Shown one piece after another: positions 11,639 to 53,925 of a stretch of 64,000 nt of DNA. This DNA is from Takakia lepidozioides (lineage: Eukaryota; Plantae; Bryophyta): contig CM060734.1 in the NCBI GenBank assembly GCA_030704615.1, forward strand, positions 54,126,001 through 54,190,000. The letters run 5' to 3'. The number at the start of each line of letters is the position of its first letter. The first letter of the stretch is position 1. The notes beneath the pieces are model-generated. The model ran no database searches. It saw only the letters and a list, made by a program, of their open reading frames with translations, and was not told where the DNA came from. A program made the translations under genes and the position numbers.

Positions 11639-11883
11639 TCCTTGAGCTGCTTGCCCTACAGTGCAGTTGCAAGGGTTTAGCGTCCGTGTGTGAGCAGAGC
11701 ATTCGGGGTTTATTGGGGATCGTTGCTAGAGGGTGCCCTCTTCTCCCCCTCGTTGTTAGCCTCTTCCGAACCTTGAGGTTGCTGAATTTTTATGTTCGTG
11801 GACTGCCACGCTTTCAGGCCGACTTCGCTACGAACTGCATGTTCTACAGGCTGTGAAGTTCGAAGTTGGGCACCTGCGTCCTC

Positions 11884-14800
11884 ATGAATTTCAAATTCAA
11901 CAATCTCTTGGGGGCGCCCTTCAGGGGCGGCAACATTGTTTTTAAAGGAAATGGTCTTCTTCTCTCACCAGTGGGTAACCGTGTCTCCCTCACCGATCTT
12001 GTGAAGTCGGAAACTGTGACACTTCCCTGTGAGAATTCCAAGAGCATAATTAGGATTGCATTGTCTCCAAATGGGGCTCTCCTGCTGTCTGTAGATGAGG
12101 ATGGCCGATGTTTGCTGATAAATTTACAGAACCGGGTCGTTCTCCACCATTTTTCCTTCAAGGGGCCTGTTACAGCATTGAAGTTCAGTCCTGACGGTAC
12201 CCTCTTTGCTGCCGGGGTAGGGAAGCTCGTCCAAGTTTGGCAGACTCCTGGATTTCGAAAAGAGTTTGCTCCTTTTCAGCTACTCAGAACTCTTACGGGT
12301 TGTCATGATAAAATCACATGCCTCGATTGGAGTTCTGATAGTCGGTGGATTGTGGCCGGGTCGAAAGACCAGACGGCTAGATTGTTTTCTGTGTATAAAG
12401 TACAGGCATTTCAGCCAATGACTTTTATGGGGCATCGTGATGTCATTATGGGAGTCTTTTTCTCGAAACCTCTTTCGATAGAGGATACAGGCTTGTATAC
12501 AGTATCCCGGGACGGAGCTATCTTTGACTGGAGGTTTTTCCCAAACAATGGTGTGACTGCAATGAGTGACAAGGACCTGAAGGGGGCCGTAGATGAGAAT
12601 GATGGGGGCCATCTGCAAGCAGAAGGAAGGGAAAAGGAGTCCATCCACTTCACCAGTGGACGTTGGGAGCAAGTGAAGAAGCATTTTTCTATGCAGAGTG
12701 GAAAACTGACAGCTTGCGACTATCACATGGGCCTCAATCTTCTAGTTGCTGTATTTTCTTCAGGAGTTTTTGGTCTCTATCAGCTGCCTGACTTCACATG
12801 CATCCACCTCCTCTCTATGTCAAGAGAACGAATCACAACGTCAGTGTTCAATAGTGCTGGTAACTGGCTGGCTTTTGGGTGTGCAAAATTGGGTCAGTTA
12901 CTGGTGTGGGAATGGCGCACGGAAACGTACATTTTGAAGCAGCAGGGTCACTTCTTTGATGTGAACTGTGTAGCCTTCTCTCCTGACTCACAATTACTTG
13001 CAACTGGTGCTGATGACAATAAGCTCAAGGTAGACTCCTCGCTTTAGCCAGAATTTTGCGGATGTTCGGTTGGGTCTTGAGTGTGGTTGTAGTTGTGAAA
13101 GAGAGAAAAAGAAGGAGAAAGAAACTTAATGGTGGCAAAAGAGAGAAAAAGAGGAGAGAAAGAGATTGGTCTGATTGTACTTGGAAGGTGCTTTAATTAG
13201 GTGCTGGAGTGGTGCAGGTGTGGAATGTGGCATCAGGCTTTTGCTTTGTGACCTTCACAGATCACACAAACGCCATCACAGCAGTGCTATTTTTGCCAGC
13301 CAGTCATGCAGTTGTTAGTGCATCATTGGATGGAACTGTACGGGCTTGGGATCTGATGCGCTATCGCAACTTCCGGACCTTTACCACTCCATCTCCAACC
13401 CAGTTTGTGTCATTGGCTGCTGACCAGAGCGGGGAAGTGATTTGTGCAGGCACCCTAGATTCGTTTCAGGTATTAAACAGCCATTCTCATTTCTTATGAG
13501 CTGCACTGTATTTCGCAGCATTGAAATCAGCTCAGGCATTGCACAACAGTCAGCCTTGCATGAGTTTTGTTGTATTATTTTACTGTCATGTCACGTGAAT
13601 CTGCATAAGATGTCTTTGATGGTGTTGTTGTGGAGAAGTTGGAATGTTTCTTGACTCTCAAGGGGTGTGGGCAGATATATGTCTGGTCGATGAAAACTGG
13701 ACGACTGCTGGATGTGTTAAGTGGGCATGAAGGACCAGTTCATGGCCTGTCCTTCTCTCCTATCCATGTGAGTGACCCTTTCAATCTTTAAGGTTCTGGG
13801 CTGTTGGAATTATTTTGGGTAAGGAGTTCACATGAGTGGTTTCTTTGTGTGGAGCAGGAGATCCTTGCATCGTCGTCATGGGACAAAACAGTGCGACTGT
13901 GGGATGTCTTTGAAGGCAAGGGTGCCATTGAAACATTGGTGCACACACATGATGTGCTGGCACTGGCTTACCGGCCTGATGGCAAGCAACTGGCCTGTAG
14001 CACACTGGATGGCCACATCCACTTGTGGGATCCCATCAATGCCCAACTCATGGCCACCATTGACGGCCGCCGTGACATCGCCGGTGGAAGGCTGATGGGT
14101 GACCGCAGAACGGCAGCTAACTCTAGTTCAGGAAAGTGCTTTACCAGCCTTTGCTACTCTGCCGATGCCTCCTTTCTCCTTGCTGGAGGTACCAGCAAGT
14201 ACATCTGCATGTACGATGTGGCTGATCAGGTTGGCAACCTTTCTCCAACCCGCACACTGTCTCAAAGCCCTTTTCCTCTTCTTCTGCATCCAAAGTTGGC
14301 CTGTCATTTGGTTGGGAATTGTTTCTGTGGGTGACCTCCTTTTGTCCCATGAACCAGCATTTATTGTTCCCATGCACCCAATGTTCCATCCATTGTGACA
14401 TGTATCCACACTTACAGACTAGTTATTCATAATATCACATATCACTCTACATATAACTTCCCAATGAACTAAAGGCTAAAGCTGTCTGCAAAGGAGGACC
14501 TCACAAATTTGTCACTTATCATATTGACAACCGTAAGGGAAGAGGATGTACTCATTGACTGATTCCTGTTGATGTTGGCATAGAAGGCCTGGTCCCTGTA
14601 AACATATGCCCAGAGTAGTTGTGTGGGAAGTTGTGGATTGTGTTAGTCGCACAATCTGCCAGATTGTTAGAAAGTGTGAGGAATTTTTTTTGTGTGAGTA
14701 GTAATGGTGTAAGAGTTCCCGTGTGAAGTTAAAAACTGGCTGTGGCAGTAATACAGCCAGTCTAGGAGGCACTCAACGATTGCTTCATTTTATCCATTCA

Positions 14801-16207
14801 ATTTCAAGGTTATCTCATTAGGATATCGATTTACAATTTGTTGTCAGCAGAGGTGTAAGCTGAGGGTTTCCGTGTCTTTGGTGCAGGTGTTGCTACGGAG
14901 GATTCAGATAACGCACAACCGTTCCTTTGATGGTGTGTTGGATTTCCTGAACTCCAAAAGAATGACAAGTGCAGGGCCACTTGACCTAATTGATGATGAC
15001 GACAGTGACAAGGAAGAAGGAGTAGATCGCCAAGCACAAGGAAAATTGGGGTTGGGACTGCCTGGAACCAACAGCAACTTGGGGCGGCCCATTGCCCGTA
15101 CTAAGTCTCTCCAGATCTGTCCTACAGGCAGGTCATGGGCAGCTGCCACCTCGGAGGGCTTGCTTTTGGATGCCCTAGATGCTGCCCTTGTCTTTGATCC
15201 CTCAGACCTTGATGTGGACATAACACCTGAGGTATTCTTACATTTTGAATTCTGCACTGAAATTGGCGTCTGCTGACTTTAAAGCAGAGCAGGATGAACC
15301 AGGGGCCAGAATAGGAGGGACAGAGCACTATTAACGTGGCTTCAGACAGTTCTAGTTTGACAACTCGTAGTTGCTATTCTAAGGCACAAGATGTTGGTGC
15401 TTGTGCTTGTTGGTAATTGACTGGCATGGCAATCTGATTGCAGGCAGTTGAACTGGCATTGCAAGAGAAACAAAATGGGCGTGCACTGCTACTGGCCCTG
15501 CGACTAAATGAAGGCAGCATCATTATGCAGTGTGTAGAGGCTGTGCATCCTACAGAAGTTACAAGTGTAGTCCATGCAATCCCAATCTCTTACCTAGGCA
15601 CTCTCCTTACAGCACTTTCAGAGTATTTGGAGAATTCTCCTCATCTGGAGTTCCTACTTATTTGGTGTCAGGTACCGTCTCTCTCTTGTTCTTCCGAAGT
15701 TTTATTTTTGATCTTTCCTCAATCGGCAGATGTTCATGAGATAGAAGCATCCATTTTTTCCTTGTGATGCCCTTTTTCAAGGGGCTTTGTTTGGATAGCA
15801 GGGCTGGTGACATTGGATGAGCAGACAGAGTAGGCAATAGTATGTCCGGCTCTCATGTTTGTTCACAGTTTGACTCTAATCAGCCAAGTAGAGTCGGGAA
15901 CTTCCCTTCCAAAAGTTGCTCGGATTGTTAGATGACGGCATCTGCGTATTCCTAATTTTACTATTCCTGTTTTGTCACAGCTGTGCCACGAGATTGAGGG
16001 ATCTGGCTTTGATGGGTGCAGGAGCTGTGTGTTGGGCATGGGAAGTCGATGGAAGCGCGTCACAGAGAATTGTTGCCTCAATTGCGATCCCTCCAAAAAG
16101 GCCTTATCCAACTGCATGAAGATTTGGCCGGTTCATGTCGTTCCAATCAGTATTTACTTCAGTATCTATGGTCTGCCCCATCTAGCATGCAGGTGGCTAG
16201 GACATAA
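11884..16207 (+). CDS. PWP2: Periodic tryptophan protein 2 (UTP1), WD40 small-subunit processome component, 7 exons
   Basis: Begins MNFKFNNLLGAPFRGGN...LLSPVGNRVS; contains LGQLLVWEW..ETYILKQQGH, RAWDLMRYRNFRTF, IDGRRDIAGGR and a C-terminal Utp12-like SPHLEF segment. Exons 11884-13029, 13218-13469, 13675-13767, 13858-14229, 14887-15231, 15444-15671, 16022-16207. Confidence 0.96.
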
Positions 16208-17305: not shown

Positions 17306-17762
17306 CTTCGTTGTAAATGACAAGTTGCATCCCAGAATTAAGGAAATCCATGCTGAGCTGAGAAGATTGTCTGGGCAGATGAAGGAGGCGGGGTATGTGC
17401 CTGACACGCGCTCTGTATTGCATGATGTGGGGGAGGAGGAAAAGGAATTTTCTCTTTGCCACCACAGAGAGAAGCTGGCCATTGGTTTTTGGCTTATCAG
17501 CACGACCCCTAGGACGCCTCTCCGTCTCATCAAGAATCTTCGAGCGTGTGGTGACTGCCACACCTGCACCAAATTCATCTCAAAGATTGTTGGCCGAGCA
17601 ATTGTTGTACAGGACGCTAACCGCTTTCACCACTTTGAAGATGGGATTTGTCCTTGTGGGGATTACTGGGGAAAGGATGTTTTGTTGGAAGATGCAGGTG
17701 TCTTGCTTCATTCATTGATCTGTGTAGCTACTCAGATCATCAAACATTTCCGAGACTATTGA
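17306..17762 (+). pseudogene. Orphan DYW cytidine-deaminase domain fragment of a PLS-PPR RNA-editing factor
   Basis: [10 protein letters not shown]...[10 protein letters not shown]...HHREKLAI...[10 protein letters not shown]...[19 protein letters not shown]. No ATG or PPR repeats upstream (AT-rich sequence instead). The codon after DYW is GGA rather than a stop. Confidence 0.85.
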
Positions 17763-19324
17763 CCATGATGTACTGTTTAGTGCATTTGTACTGTTGAGTC
17801 ATCGAGGATTGGTCATAGACGCCTGTTCGGTCATAGGCCATTTTATCCTAGTGTTTTGGATGGAAGACTAGTGATGAATTGAGAATCCCCAGAGTTCTCG
17901 ACGATCTTACAAGGTCAAATTGGGGGGCTCTACTCTTCCCACCACGAGAACTAAACAGGGCCACTCACCCCGTCAGTCCAATGCGACCGCATCATGCCGC
18001 TGCAGCGGAACATGGGCGGCCACAGCCGACTTTCACTTAACACATGCTTCATCCCCTAAGTGACTCCCTGTTCATTTGTGCATGATTGTGCGAGATACCA
18101 TCCCGTGTAGGCCACGCGTCCAAGCACCTGCACTTTGCCATCGGTCACTGAGCTACACCATGTTCAACGGTGTTAATCTGATCAATACTCCCCTAGATTT
18201 CACTGCAGGCAGTCCTCACGACTCTGTATTCTACCAAGCTCTGCCCACAGTGACGATTCACAGTTCGCCGTTGCTGTCGATGCTCGTGCTCATTACACCT
18301 TAGTGGTTAATTTCAATCATGCACCGATCCCCAAGGAGTGTAAAAGGACCGAACTTTACACACACCTGATTAGAATATTTCTTCAGAAAATAATGCAATC
18401 CTGGTACATTTGATACATCCAACAACTCGTCATTGTCAGCCTTTTTTCAATGTTGCAAATAGGACGCCTTGCCCACGTCTGGTAATTACGAAGTTATGAC
18501 TGAAGCCAAGGAGGTTAAAGTTGAATCTCCTCTCCTAAAGCGTAACCATCCTTACACAGAACTAGCCCATCGTGGGTTTCAAAAGGTTTCAATCGATGTG
18601 AAGGACAGCTACCATAGTAAGATATCAGATACTTTTGAAAATATGTACATGTACGAAACCCGTAGCAGTACCACCTTAAAAACTTCCAGTGAGTGGTATG
18701 TCAACGAACTGATTGCAGAAGGGCAGCACTATTGCTGGACGGTCAAAACCCAAACAAATCCTCAAAGATGCTGCTATTGCCAAGAAAAGTACAATTCTTG
18801 TTTCCAAATCCCTCTAAATTCTGTCCATACTGTACAAGTCGAATCCCGTTGATGCAGACATCATTTTCAGGATTGTTTATGCCTTCGGCAAAGAACCTTT
18901 CCAGTGGATTCCATTCACCTGCAAAATTCCAAACGCACCCGTTACTGCACTACCTAATTCCCTCACCGAAGGTGGGAAGTACATATGGAGTTCATTCCCC
19001 TTTGATTACCAACAACGTTTATTGGTAAATGGAATAGAGAGTCAAGTTGATACATAAATCATGAAATGTTCACTCGGGAGTCTGCATCCTCAGAGTTCCA
19101 TCTCCTGACATATTTATAATAATGAAGGAGGAATCCAGCTAAAATGCGTAAACGGCTTTTCCAACTGCAAGTACCTCAGACTTCGAACAACATGTCATAA
19201 TCATGAGCAGGCAGGCATACCGAAGTGATAGAATCGAGTATTTTACACCCAAAAATAGGCCACGTCCATGTTGAGTGCATAGCATCTTCCAGAGATGTCT
19301 TGGAGTGTGCACTTCCTTTATGAG

Positions 19325-20967
19325 TCACCTCTCATAAGATCCAGGGGGTTCCTTCACTAGCGCTGAAGCAAAAGCCAGTTGCCTTGATTTACACTGCTTC
19401 CACAACCAGTGCAAATCAAATTAGTGAAAGACTTTCATACTATCTTGCTGACTTTAACCCATGTCCCAAAGAATGCAGAGAATACAATAATGTTTTGGTT
19501 TGTCAATGACTCGGCAATGTACCATTCAGTATGTACAGAATGAATCGCTTTTGAAACATGTAAGTTCTGCGAAGACTAACAATGTCAGATATTCAACGTT
19601 TTCCTGAATAGGATAAGCTACTGCAGCAACATACTTCAGTCATGGTTGATTAACGGAGTACCTGATGGCAACGGCCGCAATGGATGGGTCGGCCGACCAT
19701 GCAGCTGTAAGTGTCAGCCAAAGGCACACCCAAGGACTTGCCCAAGCTGACCACCTCAGCCTTCGTCAAATGGCTGCAATCACAACAAATGAAGTTACTG
19801 ATCACTGGCTGTTACAAGACCAACAATAGATTCATGCACCATACATACATGATTGCGGAGCTACAGTATCTAAGCAAATTTGCAGAGAACAGCCGACCCT
19901 CGAAAGCTACCTCAAAGGAGTAAGTAGAGTCACAGGTGGCTGCAACGAGGCTGCTGTAGAGCGGAAACTATCCAGAAACGTTTGAGATGCACTGCAGAAT
20001 GACAATCACTCAGGAACCACTTGTCATTATCCTGCAAAGTGAATAAAACTCAACGCAGTGGGAGGGGATGGTAAGGAAGGACAAACCGGGCATGGCCTTA
20101 CCTTGAGTATGAGCCAAGGTCCTCTTTATTGAGCCCAAGGGCGACCACATTTGATCCTACCTTCAACAAAAGAATCATATCACAGACCATTTTCATGCCT
20201 TCAGAATCACAGTTGAGAATCATTTGAGAAAACTGCTTTCAGGTAATCGGAATTCAAGAAAGCCAGAACAAGTGCCAAGCCTAAGGCGACATTTGTGGAC
20301 AGGTCTTTATACTGGCTCTAGGGAATTCTATAATCAACGTCAAAAAATTGCTGCATGGAGAGCTTCGACGTGTACGCCCCGACCTGAAATCACTTGTGGC
20401 AGTGGAAAAATAGCGTATTTTACAAGTGAGGAATGTAGAAACCTGACTAGCATAACTCGCTGCCAGCCCTAGAATCACAAGATTTCTGTGTGGCAGTGGC
20501 ACGAACGACTTGGCCCCCTGTTGCAAAGCCCTAAATTGTTCGCCCACCTGCAATCCTCAGACAGCTTCAGAACAAGTCCAATGTTCCTCGAATTCTTTCG
20601 TTTCTTTCATTACTGTGGTTTAGTACATGGTTAGAAAATACTCAAATGAAGCAGGGGGAGCACATACCGTGGACATGTCGATGCGACTTAACTGTAACCC
20701 AAGTTTATGGCAGATCTTGTCGCTTGCCTGCTCCTCCATTGCTGCCCCCTTTTGACCATAATTGATGTACCTACGTTAGGAAAAATAATACAAATCGTCA
20801 ATTGCAAGAAATAGGAAAGAAATGTCTGTGTTTAGGGTTTAGGGTTCAGGGCGCGATTGAGAGGCTTACAAAGGATGAAGGAGCGCAGAAGATGACCGCC
20901 AGTGATAAAGCAACGCAGCGCTCTCAATTCCACCACTCATCAGCACCACACTACTGGATCCGGCCAT
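19325..20967 (-). CDS. QueC-family (7-cyano-7-deazaguanine synthase-like) PP-loop ATPase, 7 exons, 208 aa
   Basis: Exons 20967-20870, 20770-20668, 20547-20443, 20160-20102, 19991-19911, 19773-19662, 19393-19325 are all GT-AG and phase-compatible (627 nt, open). Motifs: VVLMSGGIES (PP-loop), YINYGQ, VPLPHRNL, TPLSHLTKAEVV, and the zinc site TYSC-x7-CGRCHQCKSR. Confidence 0.9.
20831..20851. repeat. Three telomere-type repeats / telo-box in intron 1 of the QueC-like gene
   Basis: TTTAGGG TTTAGGG TTCAGGG read directly from the sequence. Confidence 0.7.
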
Positions 20968-21366
20968 GGCTTCTCTCTTCCAGAACCGAAACACACCCCG
21001 GAGCTTCAACTTCACCACATCTTGAATCGAAATTCTGGTGAAAAACGCAATCACAAAGACCTGGATCATGCGATTCTCTGACTCAAGAAGCACAATCACC
21101 CTAAAAAATAATCCGAAACACAATTAAGCACTTACAGCATTGAATTAGTTAATATTCATTGAAACGTTTCATTGAGAGCGGCAATCACGCGAAACGGACC
21201 GGAAGAAAGGTAACTTACAAGAATGATATCGTTCTATGTACTTATCAAAGCACTTTCCCTTGCCCATTTGAGTCGGGATTCCATTGGTCTGTATTAGCTG
21301 CGCGGCTCATGTTCGAAGAAGTAGTCCGAAGATCAAGGTTCACTGAATTGTTGCAAAGATTTGGAA

Positions 21367-23538
21367 ATGGAGTCAGGAGAGTCACATTCCGGAAGATGGT
21401 GGTGCCCACAAGGAGTTCCTGGCATCGCAAGCTCGGTTGGAGGAACCATTGGGGTGTTGTTGATTTCCACGCTCCTTGCTTATGTAGTGGTGGTACATGA
21501 GCGCCGGAAGAAGCTCCCCCCGGGTCCTTGGCCATGGCCCATCTTCGGCAATCTGGGTGTCTTATCTGGTCTTCCGCACAGACGTTTGCAGAAGCTGGCT
21601 GCCAAGTATGGCGGCCTCATGTATCTCCAGCTGGGTATGCGCATTGCAGCTAGATTCCACTTCTTCATTTCCCGTATGGATGCACTTAATTGTATGTCGA
21701 TTGGTAGCTTGAGATTTGACAGCTTAATCGCTGAATTTGCAGAGGATAGAATGCGTTGAAGATTCTTCTTGTGTGGATTAGACCGGGGTGGGCATCTTCA
21801 ATTCTTCACTACAGTGTCGTGTGAACCCCCCATTAGGTCAAGTGCCCTGTCTCGTCGTGTGCACTGCCGCAGCAGCCAAGGATTTGTTCAAGACCCACGA
21901 CGCGGTATTTTCAAACCGACCTAAGAGACTGGACCACAACATCCTATCTGGGTCTAGTTACAAAAGCTTGACAAGCGCTCCTTATGGGCCGTACTGGCGC
22001 CAGGTTCGAAGAATCTGCAACACCGAGTTGTTCTCGCCTGCGCTTCATGCGTCTCATGAGAGCTTCAGGAAAGAGGAGATTCACACCATGATGAAGGTTC
22101 TTCTGGCGGCGTCGCAGACAGGAGATGCCATTGACCTCCAAAGCTGGTCGACTGGGGTGACTGCCAACAACACGACGAGGATGCTCGTCAACAAGAGGTA
22201 ACGATTCCATTTGCAAATCTCTGGAACATCACGAATCTCTAACTGCAGTGGTGTAAGTTTTTTCAATAATGTAGATGAAGCTCTCATTGTGTTCGAATAC
22301 TAATTGAGGTTTTTTGATATGTAAACTGATAACTCATCAACATTGTTGAACTTCGGAACAGAATCATGGTAACCATTGAATTCAATGTGTCTTCTTCGTG
22401 CAACAGGTACTTTGGTACTGACATTTCGGATCAGCAAGAACAGAAAGACTTCGAGGAGCTGCTCGATCACCTGTTTGCTGCAGCTGGGGGCTTCTTCATC
22501 AGCGACTTCATCCCATACTTGGCATTCGTCGAAAAGTTGCGGGGTATCATAGCCAAGCTTGAAGCAATTCGAGCATTTCTAAGAAGAGTCATAGGCAAGA
22601 TTTTCGAGGTGGAGAAGCACAAGCAACGGACAGTGGAAAGAGGGCAGGATGTGAACTATGTGCCAGACTTTGTGGATGTCTTGCTGAAGACCCCGCTCGA
22701 TGACGGAGAGCAGTTCACCGATGGAGAGATCATATCCATACTTTCGGTACAAAGTTTTGCATTGTACTCAAGCTCTCCTACTCCTTTACAGCTTGTAAAG
22801 GAATCTAATCCATAGCATCAGATTTATGACAAAGATTCTGCCCATACTGCAAGATTTAAAACTTAAAATCTTATCCCTGCGAATCTGTTCTCGGTGTCAT
22901 TGCAGAGCATGATATCTGCTGGAACGGAAACCAGTGCAAATACGGTGGTGTGGGCGATGTCGGAGCTCATGGTAAACCCGGATATCAGGAAGCAAACCCA
23001 GGAGGAGCTGGATGCGGTGGTTGGAACCGGACATCTTGTGCAAGAATCGGATATCCCAAACTTGCCGTTCCTTCGTGCCATCGTCAAGGAGACATTTCGT
23101 TTGCATCCTGCTATACCCCTATCGCTTCCTCGTTGCTCGAACCAACCATGTGTAGTTGCAGGGTGCCAGTTTCCAGAAAACACGAGACTGATATTAAATA
23201 TATTTGCTATTCACCGTGATCCAAGCATGTATGAGAATCCTGATAGTTTTCAGCCGACCAGGTTCCTGGAGCATCCGGAGGTGGATCATCTGTCGGGCCA
23301 GAATTACTATCAGCTAATTCCGTTTGGTGTTGGGCGACGAATGTGCCCCGCTTACAATCTCGGCAACACCATGGTAATGCTGATGGTGGCCAATCTTCTC
23401 CACAGCTTTGACTGGAGCCTGCCTTCGGGAGTAAGCGCCGAGAACCTCGACATGGCTGAGGTTTACAAACTCGTATATTTTAAGAAGGAGCCCTTGTCTT
23501 TGATCGCCAAACCCAGGAGCCCAGCCTATCTGTACTAA
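21367..23538 (+). CDS. Cytochrome P450, CYP71 clan (A-type), 4 exons
   Basis: N-terminal membrane anchor then LPPGPWPWPIFGNL; APYGPYWRQVR; I-helix AGTETSA; ETFR; heme motif FGVGRRMCPA. Exons 21367-21634, 21837-22197, 22407-22746, 22906-23538. Confidence 0.95.
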
Positions 23539-24506: not shown

Positions 24507-25465
<959 letters not shown>

Positions 25466-27978: not shown

Positions 27979-30900
27979 TGTCGCACACCTAAGCATCGTG
28001 CCACAACATACATCGCTGTCCACCATACATTCTAAGCACACAATCTTAGAAAGCTATGCCACAATGATAATGAAAGTGAACACAATGGAAACACTCCACT
28101 CATGAATCCACTCAATCACATAAACTAAGTCAAGCCAAGGGCACCCTTGCTAAGGGAATCCACCCTACAAAGCCCTCATCACACTCCCTCTCAATACCTA
28201 GAGCTATGGGAGAGAGGCTCATGGAGGCTCAGCTATAAGAAGATGAGCCCTCCTCAACACTCACAAGGGGAAAATCCATCCCCACGTCCCAAGTGAGGTT
28301 TGATACCTCACTTGGCATGTGAGACCAAATGAAGTCCAAACACACAAAATACAAATATAAATATCCAAAATGTCTTAGTTAACTAGAAGGAGGCAGGGAG
28401 ATTCGCACTTGGCAGACAAATCTGGTTCTCAGCCGAAGAGAAGAAAATAAAGCGATAAGGAGGCAAGTGATGCTTGTTTGCTGAACCTGTAGCCCATAGC
28501 CAACCAAAGTAGCTGAAGGTCCCAATCTCCCAGGTGTTCCTTTTGCAAACCGTACTTATGCAAACCCCTCTTGACGGTCTGAACAACTCTCTCCACCAAG
28601 CCATCAGCCTCGAGATGATCCCAAGAAGTAGTGCGGTGATCTATCAAGGCTTGCTCACACAAAGCCTGAAACTTCCCCAAGAACTCTCTCCCCTGGTCCG
28701 TGAGTACCTCGGCTGAGCACCAAATTGGCTAATCACTCAATCTAAAAATGTATACACAACCCCCTCACTTACCTTGACAGGCAAAGACACTAGCTCAATC
28801 CATTTCGAGAAGTGTTCCACCATCATCAACACATACTTGTTGTGGCGCATCATCAATGGCAATGGTACCGCGAAGTCAAGACTCCATCGATATCCCAATC
28901 TCATGATGGGTAAAGGATGCAATTGTGGAGTAGGTGCATTAAAAGAAGCACACACCCTATCACACACCATGCACCTTGCCCCTAACTGTTGCACATCTGT
29001 GTGCATGCCCCGCCACCAATACTGCCATTGTAGCAAACTATGAGTGCGTCGCACCCCAAAATGTCCCAACTCCTTATGGGCATGGCGTACCAATCGCGCT
29101 CGTTGTGTTGGATGAGGCACAATTCTCACTTGTCCATCCTCCTATACTCGGAGCAGGTGAGTCCCCTCCCACTTGAACCTCTTGGCCCGTTGTAGGATCC
29201 GATCTCTCTCCTTAGCAGTCACACTGGCTACTGTCTCTCCGGTACGAAGGTAGGCCAACAGTGCTGCATCTTCATGTATATCTTTAGCACCACCAAGCTC
29301 ATCATTGATCTCTGGATCGTCATTGATCTCTATGACCAATCACATGGGATAGACCAGCTTGAGCTCCCATTGCTAGAATGCACAAAAAAACAGATACATA
29401 CGATCCTGGCACCATCTCCTCATCCGTCTCACCATGCCACCGAGCTCCAGTATCATCATGTTTGCTCATGCATGGATTACGACTCAACCCATCTGCATCC
29501 CGATTGACTACACCGGCTCGATGCACCCCCTGGATTGGAGCAATGTTCACACAGGTGGATGACGAGGTAAGAGAGTTCGTAGTGGCATATGCTAGCAGCT
29601 CGAACAATGATGTCGAGGCGAAGTATAGCTTATATGAAGGGGAGTGTTTAGCTGCGGTATGGACAGTGACACATTTCAGATGCTACCTCAATGACAATCT
29701 CTTCACCTTTGTCATGGATCACCAACCATTGAAGTGGTTGATGGAGTCAGACAAGCTTACAGAAAAGCTTGCACGATGGGCATTTATGCTTCAAGAGTAT
29801 CCCAGCATACTCTAATCTGTATGTAGCTGGAAAGGCCACCCCCGAATAGGCCGCCTCAGAATAGGTGCAGAAGTCAATCGAGCCTTGAGTTCCTCAAAGA
29901 CTTCCTCCTGCTCCTCCTCTTACTGCCACTCCTGACTCACCTTGGTCAACTTGGTAAGAGCCTTTGCAATGCTGCTAAATCCCTTGACAAACTGTCGATA
30001 GTAGTTTGCCAACCCCATGAAAGCACGAACTCTGCTAACAGCGATGGGGCGTGGAATGCGTGTAATGGCCTCCACCTTCATTTTTTGAACACCCAATCTT
30101 CCAAGGTATATCATGTGGCCCAGATACTTAATCTGGTTGTGGAAGAACTTGCACTTCCCAGGGTGCAATTTCAACCCATGCGCTCTCAAGCGCTCAAACA
30201 CCATCTGAAGGTGTCTCTCGTGTTCCTCAATCGTAGCACTAAAGATGATGATGTCATCAATGTAGCACCGGGCGAAGTTTAGCCCTGCAAGAATCCTATC
30301 CATGACCCTCTAAAACTCTGTAGGAGCATTCTTCAACCCAAATGGTAGGAACCGCCATTGGTACAAGCAATCCTTCCCATGTTGGTCAATCCCCCAGAAT
30401 GTCATCTTTTGCTTGTCAGCCTCTTTGATTGACAACTGATGATAACCGGATTGCAAGTCCAATGTACTAGACACCTTTGCATGCCCAATGGCATCAAAGT
30501 TCTCCTCTGGAGTTGGCATGACATATCTATCGGACTCTGTCTGACGGTTCACAGGACGGTAGTCCCCACACATCCTCCTTTCTGTCCAATTGCCATAGAT
30601 ATCCTTCTTAGCTGACATCACCGTTGTCGAGGCATACTCCCCGCCTGACAACTCCACCAATCCAGCTTTGAACAACTTCATAGTCCGTGACTAGATCAAA
30701 GAACTCTCAATATCACTATACCTGTAGGGCCTTCGAAAAATTGGCGTGACACTTGTCAAATCAATACGAATCTCCTGGCCCTTCATACTCCAAAAATCCT
30801 TCAAACCGAAGGCAAAACAATTTCTATAAGCCCTTAGAAATCGCTAGATCATCCGTCTCTCTCCTCCGATAACTGTAGGTCCAACATCTAGTTCCCAGTT

Positions 30901-51200: not shown

Positions 51201-52146
51201 CCGGATCAGAGTCCTTGAAGTTTCAGAAACGTTGAAGTAAGCGCCTTTGCGTGGTTATGTGTGTGGTTTTTCGTGGAGAGAGAGACAGGGAAAAGACAGA
51301 CGAATAGAAGGAAGACAGAGATTTAGTTTGTGAAATGTTTCGGCCAATGATCTTGCAAATGCCTGGTATTGTTACAGGCATAAGAAAAGCAATGAATACA
51401 AATTTGCCACTGTAGTGGGCAGAGTAAAATGGCTGACTGGTGTGTCCTGTCCTGTCCTTCTCAATCATATGTAACTTGTATCAATTTAGAATTTGAATGT
51501 TTGAGAAGGTGGATGAATAATCTGAGTTGCAAAGTTTGGTACATATTTAGTCACATAGACAATGGAAACTAGGATGAAGGTGAGAGCCTTTCAGAAGTCT
51601 GGCAGACACCTTGAAGATCTCAAAAACCTTCAAATGGGAGGGTGGGGAGCTTACAGAGGGGGTGCGAAGACATTGCTGTGGATTTGCAGTTGGCAGGAGA
51701 GGTTTTGAGGTTGTTTTGGATCTTGTGACAAGGAGCTACAGGGAAAAGCTTGGATCAGCAAAATTGAGGATCTAGATGATCTTGTGATGTTGGGAGGACG
51801 AAGACCTATCAGAAATTGAATGTGAGGGGTTACATCTGAAGGATTTACTGTAAGGCCATCCCATCCCCTTTGTCAGGATGCTCTGAATGGTCTGAAGATG
51901 TTCAATATGGCAGCTCTGAAATTGTAGTGGCATCAGGTGGTATGACTACTGGTTTGTCCAAGCAAGAGGCTAGCTTGTCATGAATTAACTGAAGAGTTCC
52001 AAGCAAAACAACCCCAGATCAAACAGGGATCCTCCAGAGCCAATTTCAAGCCTTGTTTGTCTGACTGGGGGAGAAGTAGCTGTGAGGAGTTGCTTGAACT
52101 GCTGGATAGTGTTGAACATGGAAAGAGTGGAGGGGCTGCCAATCTC

Positions 52147-53925
52147 ATGGAAGTCAAGAGCAAGAGCCTAGCAGAAGCCAGGGCTCAGGGCAGACTGGGC
52201 AGAGATGTCCTTGGGGTGCAAGGCCTACTCCATGGATTCCCAGGACAATCTCAGTGCCCGGGTTCACACGCCGCAGGAGCAATGGGATGTGCACATAAGG
52301 GAGGCCAATCTGGAGCCAAGGTAGGGGAGACTGCTCGAGAGGTCAGTACCACAGCCCCAACCCAAAATGTGGACCCTCAGGTGTATGAAGGAGGGAGTGA
52401 GGTAGGAAGTCAAAGGTCAAGTGGCGGTGACAGGCAGCTGGAAGTCGGTGCTCCATGCCAGATAAGAACAAATAGCAGGGGGGTTAAAGACACGGATGTT
52501 GAGCATTTAGGGAAGGCTTTAGGGTCGCAAAGAAGGGCTGATGGGGGAGATGAGAGGAGAGTGCGTATGCGAGTGAGTGATGATGCAGATGAAAGCAAGG
52601 GAGCCCGAGCTTCTCGACCTTCCGGAGGAAAAGACCGCCATAGTAAAGTTAACACAGCCAAGGGCCCAAGAGATAGGAGGGTACGGCTGTCGGTTTCAAC
52701 AGCAGTGCAGTTTTATGATGTGCAAGACAGGCTGGGTTTTGATCAGCCTAGTAAGGCAGTGGAGTGGCTCATTAAGAAGGCACAATCAGCTATTGATGAG
52801 CTTGCCCATCTTCCTGTGCACAGAGTAGATACTCCAGATATACAGGCTGGTATTCATGTCTCTAACTTCTCTGTTACCTCGCCTGCTGCTGTCAGCACCT
52901 CTGTAATAAGTTCTCGGCGTGGATCCTTTGGAACCCTAGGGATCTATACCCAGCCAAAGTTAGCCCTGAGCAAAAACGTACAGAGTATAGAGGTTGGGGG
53001 AGGGCAGGGACAAACACTGGCAACATCAGGGCCACTTGCAGAGGTAGGCATAACCATGTCAGGCTCAGAAGGTGCACGAGGTAGAGATATGGCTGGTTGT
53101 CTCTCAGCCCGAGTGGAGTCACGAGCAAAAGCAAGAGAGAGAGCCCGGGAGAGGGCGAAGGAGAAGATCTCAGGCAGAGAGGGAGGGAAAGGAATGGGTA
53201 ACCTATCACTGGCATTACGACAGCAGTCTTGTTCCTACACCAATTTGCCATTAGAGGTGGGCAGTTCACTGCAGCACCCATTTCAGGCTCCCTTTCCTGC
53301 TGGCAATCCTCATTTGCGCATGGGATCTCCTTCACGTGCCTTATCAAATGTTTCAGCAGACTCACTGGATCTATCTTCCTTCAGTGGGTCCTGTCTTCCT
53401 TCGTCCCTGTTTGCACCCCATGGACCTCTTTCTCCTCTTTCACTCTCCCAGTCTTTATCGGTCTCTCAGCTCTCTGCTCTATGCCTAACTTCAAACTCCC
53501 TTGGAGCCCATCATCAAACAGCAAATACAGCAACACCCCCAGGCTTTTCTCCTCGTCAGCCTGCCTCAGCTCTTAGGCCGAACCCACCCCCTCATCTGAG
53601 GCAAGAGTCACGACCGCCATTTCGAGGACCTTCCATATCAAATCAAGGGTTGTTTTCTACCTATGCATCTGCATCTCCAGCAGGACCATTCTTAGTCTCT
53701 CCCTTACTGTTGGGGTCTCCTTTCTCTATTTCACATGGCGCGGTTCACCCAACTGCTACTTCTCTCTCAATTGTAGGTAGTGCCAGTTATGATCACCATC
53801 AGGGGTTACAGATGACGTCCCCTGGCAGGAACTCCACCCTCTTCCAGTCTTCAGGCTCTCACATACCTGCCAGGATCCAGGGTTGTCTTGATGAGCTTGA
53901 TGAGGATTTGAAGCCATCCGATTGA
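52147..53925 (+). CDS. Class II (CIN-like) TCP transcription factor with R domain, single coding exon
   Basis: TCP domain [50 protein letters not shown] domain [16 protein letters not shown] and C-terminal IPARIQG. First in-frame ATG is at 52147. Confidence 0.95.

Follow-up and report, generated by a model that had tools for sequence, protein, structure and literature searches.

The closest described relatives of the gene analysed here are QueC, which converts 7-carboxy-7-deazaguanine (CDG) to preQ0, and a growing set of QueC paralogues. In Escherichia coli QueC, residues Y35, R99, Y131 and Y189 are essential, and Y189A abolishes the enzyme (PMC13329287). The recently studied paralogues Cap9, RoyL and QatC all carry out, or are suspected of carrying out, new ligation chemistry. 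Cap9 of type IV CBASS (PDB 9NTO) is a minimal QueC scaffold encoded in an operon with a CD-NTase and Cap10; with product bound, Y115 and R86 stack against the base while D117 reads the guanine edge, hydrogen-bonding N1/N2 of the deazaguanine (bioRxiv 10.1101/2025.04.06.647259; PMC13279940). QatC, a paralogue of ~400 aa from the qatABCD operon, has remodelled motifs and a replaced Tyr/Asp pair for CDG recognition (PMC13279940), and RoyL-type deazapurine amide synthetases and PfkB-linked paralogues (Cluster 4, PMC13329287), likewise of changed specificity, are found in biosynthetic clusters or beside pfkB. For eukaryotes, a 2026 family survey reported authentic QueC to be absent, attributing eukaryotic sequences in the canonical cluster to symbiont transfers or contaminants, and its sole trace of the subfamily described below is Physcomitrium as the top match of a haptophyte (Haptolina) protein (Table S1, PMC13329287). 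Physarum has been reported to possess QueD, QueE, QueC and QueF, its QueC matching Rhodospirillum QueC best (PMC4758236).

Within the window (the whole 64,000-nucleotide stretch of Takakia lepidozioides DNA analysed), joining seven minus-strand exons yields a 208-aa frame (CDS 627 nt) with zero internal stops, separated by six coding introns of 99-282 nt that are each GT-AG and have a GC content of 0.38-0.48, as against 0.52 for the coding sequence. The spliced moss protein contains SGGIES, YGQ, VPLPHRN, YSSAS, TPL..L.K and SC..CGRCHQC. Exon 1 (20870..20967) supplies the ATG and the SGGIES pyrophosphate loop, exon 2 (20668..20770) the YGQ...E motif, and exon 3 (20443..20547) VPLPHRN with its catalytic Arg retained; exon 4, 59 nt long (20102..20160), encodes D...Y-S-S in place of D...YPDC, exon 5 (19911..19991) TPL, exon 6 (19662..19773) the conserved Lys along with the SC-M and CGRC zinc ligands, and exon 7 (19325..19393) the last zinc Cys and the stop. 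When the moss gene was searched exon by exon (full-length searches used relatives, among them P0004 and P0121), exon 6 by itself scored 28.4 bits against Pfam QueC (PF06508, cut-off 22), and exons 2 and 3 gave weak QueC matches at colinear profile positions. An intact seven-exon, 208-aa gene of the QueC family is what the sequence-only reading had proposed, and the open GT-AG frame, the motifs and the PF06508 match bear this out.

Two public runs from two studies, presumed to be RNA, contain about one third of the words of the stretch, the pattern expected of a spliced transcript, and the joints in their contigs are themselves spliced forms. Contigs from the two runs join exactly at introns 1, 2, 5 and 6 (four of the six coding introns), which covers exons 1, 2, 6 and 7, the acceptor of exon 3 and the donor of exon 5. 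Introns 3 and 4, which flank the 59-nt exon 4, have no joints in the RNA-type contigs of these two runs, and exon 4 is missing from them, so that the proposed check of splicing by RNA succeeded for four introns but not for these two. Introns 3 and 4 are supported by Ceratodon and Klebsormidium, both of which match the exon 3 donor and have a corresponding AG/GT exon 4; exon 5 is likewise matched in Ceratodon.

Contigs lacking exon 4 continue for 35-55 nt within introns 4 and 3 (19992-20041 and 20390-20442). Because an early stop results from retaining intron 3 or 4, or from skipping exon 4, unproductive splicing may regulate the QueC-like gene. Beyond the coding region, loose contig ends from both runs that match 18888-18917 point to a GT-AG intron of 302 nt in the 3'UTR (18919..19220, minus strand), 104 nt past the stop; a 3'UTR intron so placed is a usual trigger of nonsense-mediated decay (NMD). 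Conservation of its donor region in Ceratodon is ~80%; the annotation of that genome has a separate 117-aa gene starting there.

At the other end, a contig joint in one run supports a GT-AG intron of 184 nt in the 5'UTR (21035..21218, minus strand), and the spliced leader upstream of it enters the 5' end of a head-to-head cytochrome P450 gene (leader 21219-21400; P450 21361-23538, plus strand). The two genes may overlap or have a common promoter, although the contigs cannot prove a single transcript. Inside the 5'UTR intron lies an in-frame ATG (~21067-21069, minus strand). Retention of the intron would let it extend the N-terminus by a basic, hydrophobic stretch of 34 aa, and the region with this ATG has unspliced coverage in one run. 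We considered and rejected an organelle-targeting extension, as the spliced leader contains in-frame stops and the ATG 34 codons upstream is intronic and unconserved in Ceratodon. Transit-peptide-like extensions are seen in several other eukaryotic members (P0216, P0047, P0046, P0065). A longer C-terminal isoform like that of Diphasiastrum P0128 was also rejected, the downstream region having no matching sequence.

The closest protein is P0121 of Ceratodon purpureus (KAG0564830.1), which aligns without gaps over 208 aa at 92% identity. In the Ceratodon genome, all seven exons (7/7) occur at identical AG/GT boundaries and their translation equals the deposited P0121. Between the two mosses dN is 0.044 and dS 0.44 (dN/dS 0.10); the gene is maintained by purifying selection. 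Further full-length relatives come from the lycophyte Diphasiastrum (KAJ7540259.1, 61% identity), the liverwort Riccia (KAL3688762.1, 59%) and Klebsormidium (GAQ78844.1, 52%), with a fragment from Mesotaenium; a word-based search missed even the Riccia protein and is a poor guide to absence from seed plants. The Klebsormidium locus has exons of equal length and phase and shares all six intron positions with the moss, and the gene is therefore older than land plants, having been in the green lineage since before the split between Klebsormidium and land plants. In the Klebsormidium nitens assembly, a TAG interrupts the frame of exon 2 (L079:8503-8605) where a Cys is conserved, reflecting either an assembly error or a recent loss, and the deposited GAQ78844.1 is wrongly framed there.

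The P450 neighbour is syntenic in Ceratodon, where the pair lies 3.5 kb apart with a PDF1-like gene in between. Spliced joints, this synteny among mosses and the introns shared with Klebsormidium rule out contamination, as had been argued from the sequence, and mark the locus as part of a genuinely eukaryotic QueC-like lineage whose six intron positions are the same in Klebsormidium and moss. A plant biosynthetic cluster with the adjacent P450 was rejected, given the extra gene between the pair in Ceratodon and the missing pair in Klebsormidium.

Turning to family assignment, P0121 scores 126.7 bits against PF06508, its sole Pfam match, and QueC is the best-scoring family among PP-loop models in every library. 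The match to the QueC equivalog model TIGR00364 falls below its cut-off (113.6 versus 150.3 bits), as it does for other subfamily members (69-114 bits), while a control QueC from Microvirga reaches 176.4. LarE, ThiI, MnmA and TtcA models match only marginally (at most 26 bits) and in few relatives, and the QatC model NF041925 (cut-off 280) does not match P0121 and reaches at most 27 bits in relatives. For the fold we used the predicted structure of a bacterial member, P0123 (pLDDT 95), the single-sequence model of P0121 reaching only pLDDT 48; the closest structure to the P0123 model is QueC 3BL5 (TM 0.78), followed by Cap9 9NTO (0.75), with 2PG3 also among the best PDB matches and other PP-loop enzymes at TM 0.62 or below. 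A better score to another PP-loop family had been named as grounds for abandoning the assignment; both the HMM scores and the fold exclude such a family.

A profile built from these proteins divides the fetched QueC-like sequences into those scoring at least 200 bits and those below ~170 bits, with Sulfolobales members at the boundary (166-179 bits). In a maximum-likelihood tree of 88 rows, from which long branches and near-duplicates were excluded and for which bootstrap convergence was incomplete, the subfamily forms one clade (support 100/99) separate from the QueCs of E. coli, Pseudomonas, Acinetobacter and others; within it, 14 eukaryotic rows cluster at 98/87 and six streptophyte rows at 100/89, and PfkB-linked QueC paralogues lie in the neighbouring branch (96/85). 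Prokaryotic members are found in beta- and gammaproteobacteria, Acidithiobacillia and Sulfolobales. Named eukaryotic members comprise plants, Klebsormidium, Copromyxa and Filamoeba, the remainder being assigned to eukaryotes by eukaryote-like neighbours (L077, L078, L148) or by tree placement alone. The plant gene is genuine, as the sequence-only reading held, but the lineage is not plant-specific, amoebozoans and other eukaryotes having it as well as the prokaryotes just listed. The idea of an ancient acquisition stands as regards age; the base of the subfamily is poorly supported, and the AU test does not reject a root on the streptophyte branch (p-AU 0.40), so no donor or direction of transfer can be assigned. 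Searches of plasmids, phages and IMG/VR yielded zero subfamily members, only canonical QueC or other paralogues with best matches of at most 35%, and a feature search of the ESM Atlas returned general QueC clusters only.

To compare active sites, we numbered residues after E. coli QueC and tallied them over 179 subfamily members. Y35, Q37, E42, R99, N100, D127, K165 and the zinc ligand Cys188 are kept in 98-100% of members, none of the four zinc Cys varies in the alignments (and the moss model has all four), and Y131 is found in 11/11 scored eukaryotic members and 77% overall. With canonical QueC, to which identity is 26-30%, the subfamily shares fold, size, PP-loop serines, YxQ..E, RN, the conserved Lys, the four-Cys zinc site and the Tyr of YPDC. 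What has changed is the recognition side: YPDC has become YSSA, the D133 position being Ser in 74% and Asp in 1% of the subfamily compared with Asp in 79% of sequences outside it (moss Ser122), and the Y189 position, Tyr in 74% outside, is Tyr in 0% of the subfamily, which has Met or Leu there (moss Met174). H39 is lost, the YxQ-to-RN spacing is 47 instead of 61, the lid loop lacks ~14 residues, and the motifs HVPxPHRN and CxQC are new and particular to the subfamily. In the SGGxDS loop both serines are present; its Asp is Glu in the moss and in 87% of the subfamily, and Asp in Diphasiastrum and Copromyxa. The two divergent motifs first noticed in the moss, SGGIES and YSSAS, are real, the Glu of the former being the subfamily norm and Ser122 of the latter replacing the guanine-reading Asp. 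Mosses have Phe at position 82, where His is 97% conserved in the subfamily, and the moss enzyme may for this reason differ from the rest.

The Asp of YPDC corresponds to Cap9 D117 and aligns to the moss Ser. Judged from this residue comparison with QueC and Cap9, the machinery for carboxylate activation by ATP is intact and CDG recognition is altered. The moss protein is best read as a soluble PP-loop enzyme that binds zinc and belongs to a separate subfamily of QueC paralogues, not as canonical QueC, and its substrate probably differs from CDG, in keeping with the new substrate suggested earlier; the authors of the QatC study reasoned likewise. The mutants of the Libby study did not include Asp133, whose role might be taken over in part by Ser or water.

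As to chemistry, we regard it as about an even proposition that the protein is a stand-alone, ATP-dependent adenylating ligase acting on a small acid other than CDG to form an amide, perhaps a nitrile. ATP would bind at the SGGxES loop, as in QueC and Cap9, the carboxylate would be adenylated with release of PPi, and AMP would be displaced, with ammonia or an amine as the likeliest nucleophile, to give the amide, which might be converted onward to the nitrile. The acceptor would probably be a small planar or aromatic acid sandwiched by the retained Tyr and Arg, and presumably not 7-carboxy-7-deazaguanine, since Ser replaces the guanine-edge Asp in a pocket remodelled by HVPxPHRN, CxQC and the shortened lid loop. 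Its role would most likely be in stand-alone housekeeping or in metabolite repair or salvage, and neither in queuosine synthesis nor in a defence operon.

Gene neighbourhoods bear on this role and on its rivals. None of 89 subfamily loci (mostly prokaryotic, covering up to ~6 kb per side, 37 with long flanks) has queE, queD, folE, yhhQ or pfkB nearby, compared with queE/queD in 12/45 control loci of other QueCs (p = 7e-7, a value that overstates the strength of the difference because the loci are mutually related). Bacterial members are mostly single core chromosomal genes in lineage-typical surroundings, with ferredoxin and hydrolase genes as typical neighbours in betaproteobacteria and terB/HU in gammaproteobacteria, and no same-strand partner gene recurs across the ~90 prokaryotic loci, among which CD-NTase, TGT-like and qat genes are also lacking.

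Surroundings of another kind in Sulfolobales raise the alternative of sulfur-linked adenylation, in which an activated carboxyl or carbonyl group would lose AMP to a persulfide (on a TusA-type carrier) or to sulfide, giving a thiocarboxylate or thio-product, or a sulfur-damaged cofactor would be repaired. LarE, ThiI and YcfA are sulfur-transfer precedents yielding such products. In these archaea tusA lies 1-1.5 kb away in five loci (L152, L155, L157, L158, L160), the lipoate assembly genes lipS2-lipS1-lplA adjoin the gene in four, a gcvH-like gene does so in seven, and hdrC is near in one; named bacterial hosts, moreover, are largely sulfur oxidisers (Thioalkalivibrio, Acidithiobacillus, Thermithiobacillus, Acidihalobacter, Thiohalorhabdus, Sulfuriferula and Acidiferrobacter), by a raw tally. 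However, the Sulfolobales gene is oriented away from tusA, and since the Sulfolobales members form a single, long-branched clade, the proximity of tusA and lip genes counts as one event. Neither tusA nor lip neighbours occur at any bacterial locus examined, the Cys cluster is of the QueC zinc type rather than the three-Cys iron-sulfur type of LarE, and the sHdr/lipoate literature examined does not mention QueC. We consider sulfur chemistry unlikely on balance.

Protein conjugation of the kind associated with Cap9 and QatC, whereby a small acid would be adenylated and joined to the N-terminal amine of a partner protein, perhaps in immunity, strikes us as distinctly unlikely. The subfamily is as compact as Cap9, with the same longer YxQ(x)5E spacing, a short lid loop and a non-aromatic residue right after the first zinc Cys; among structural matches Cap9 ranks second, the PADLOC CBASS QueC model scores 90 bits, and QatC too has its Tyr/Asp pair replaced (PMC13279940). 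Yet Cap9 retains the Asp of its Y-x-D (motif H(x)4YxDC), and the subfamily has neither this residue pattern nor the Cap9 operon. The absence of any recurrent partner gene, the core chromosomal setting and the lack of members in the plasmid, phage and IMG/VR searches also speak against conjugation, QatC being distinguished besides by its length, motifs and operon. The RoyL-type and PfkB-linked paralogues are set apart from the subfamily by its pfkB-free loci and by a zinc motif that differs from the CH(x)5CxxC variant.

That the moss protein is a genuine preQ0 synthase acting on CDG or ADG, as part of a hidden or incomplete deazaguanine pathway in non-seed plants that has its own QueD/QueE or takes up bacterial CDG, appears improbable. 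Three of the four essential E. coli QueC residues (Y35, R99, Y131) are retained in the moss and QueC is the top family throughout, but the guanine-reading Asp and the essential Y189 are missing, the equivalog cut-off is not reached, and linkage to que genes is zero. Because eukaryotic TGT inserts queuine, and neither preQ0 nor preQ1 (PMC3660597), preQ0 is not known to have a use in plants. The eukaryotic Que genes of Physarum provide a precedent (PMC4758236), but the subfamily-wide loss of Asp133 and Tyr189, along with prokaryotic members that never lie beside queD, queE or folE, leaves without support the hidden plant deazapurine pathway that the sequence-only reading had entertained. A zinc protein that is non-catalytic or senses ATP, or else a decaying gene, to which the P-loop Glu, the stop in the Klebsormidium assembly and the NMD-type 3'UTR intron might point, is very improbable given invariant catalytic Ser, Arg, Asn, Tyr and Lys, the low dN/dS and a Glu that is normal for the subfamily.

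A more far-reaching reading is tentative: a QueC-derived family common to sulfur-oxidising prokaryotes, protists, algae and non-seed plants might make a nucleobase-like or sulfur-containing modification or cofactor (of a small molecule, RNA or protein) new to eukaryotes or, less likely, represent the first plant enzyme of 7-deazaguanine synthesis. UniRef automatically names the Ceratodon, Riccia and Klebsormidium orthologues 7-cyano-7-deazaguanine synthase, a label that is probably wrong. Literature searches pairing QueC with mosses or land plants, with gene transfer or with Acidithiobacillus, and ExsB with the oxidation of sulfur, did not yield a paper on the subfamily; the plant orthologues are represented by database entries, and we found no experimental or comparative study of them. 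The earlier claim of novelty thus holds for characterisation but not for the sequences, which were already in UniProt under the automatic label. The subfamily's clean signature, bacterial members that are small and soluble, and Physcomitrium as a host that lends itself to knockouts make the function directly testable.

Other features were seen along the way. The window also contains genes for a PWP2-like WD40 protein (11866-16200), an NDR-like kinase (~43580) and a TCP factor (52057-53925), as well as a DYW deaminase domain from a PPR protein that stands alone (17325-17762, plus strand), apparently with no PPR repeats upstream, disrupted Ty3/gypsy sequences for reverse transcriptase, RNase H and integrase (28737-30681, minus strand) and, judged by eye, a short piece similar to the FAD-binding beginning of phytoene desaturase (~24840-24980, minus strand). 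Among the loci retrieved for comparison, a Streptomyces angustmyceticus plasmid cluster (L001:540-4195) combines queE, queD, folE, a QueC paralogue without YPDC and an ATP-grasp gene, an arrangement that we liken to roseomycin-type deazapurine clusters.
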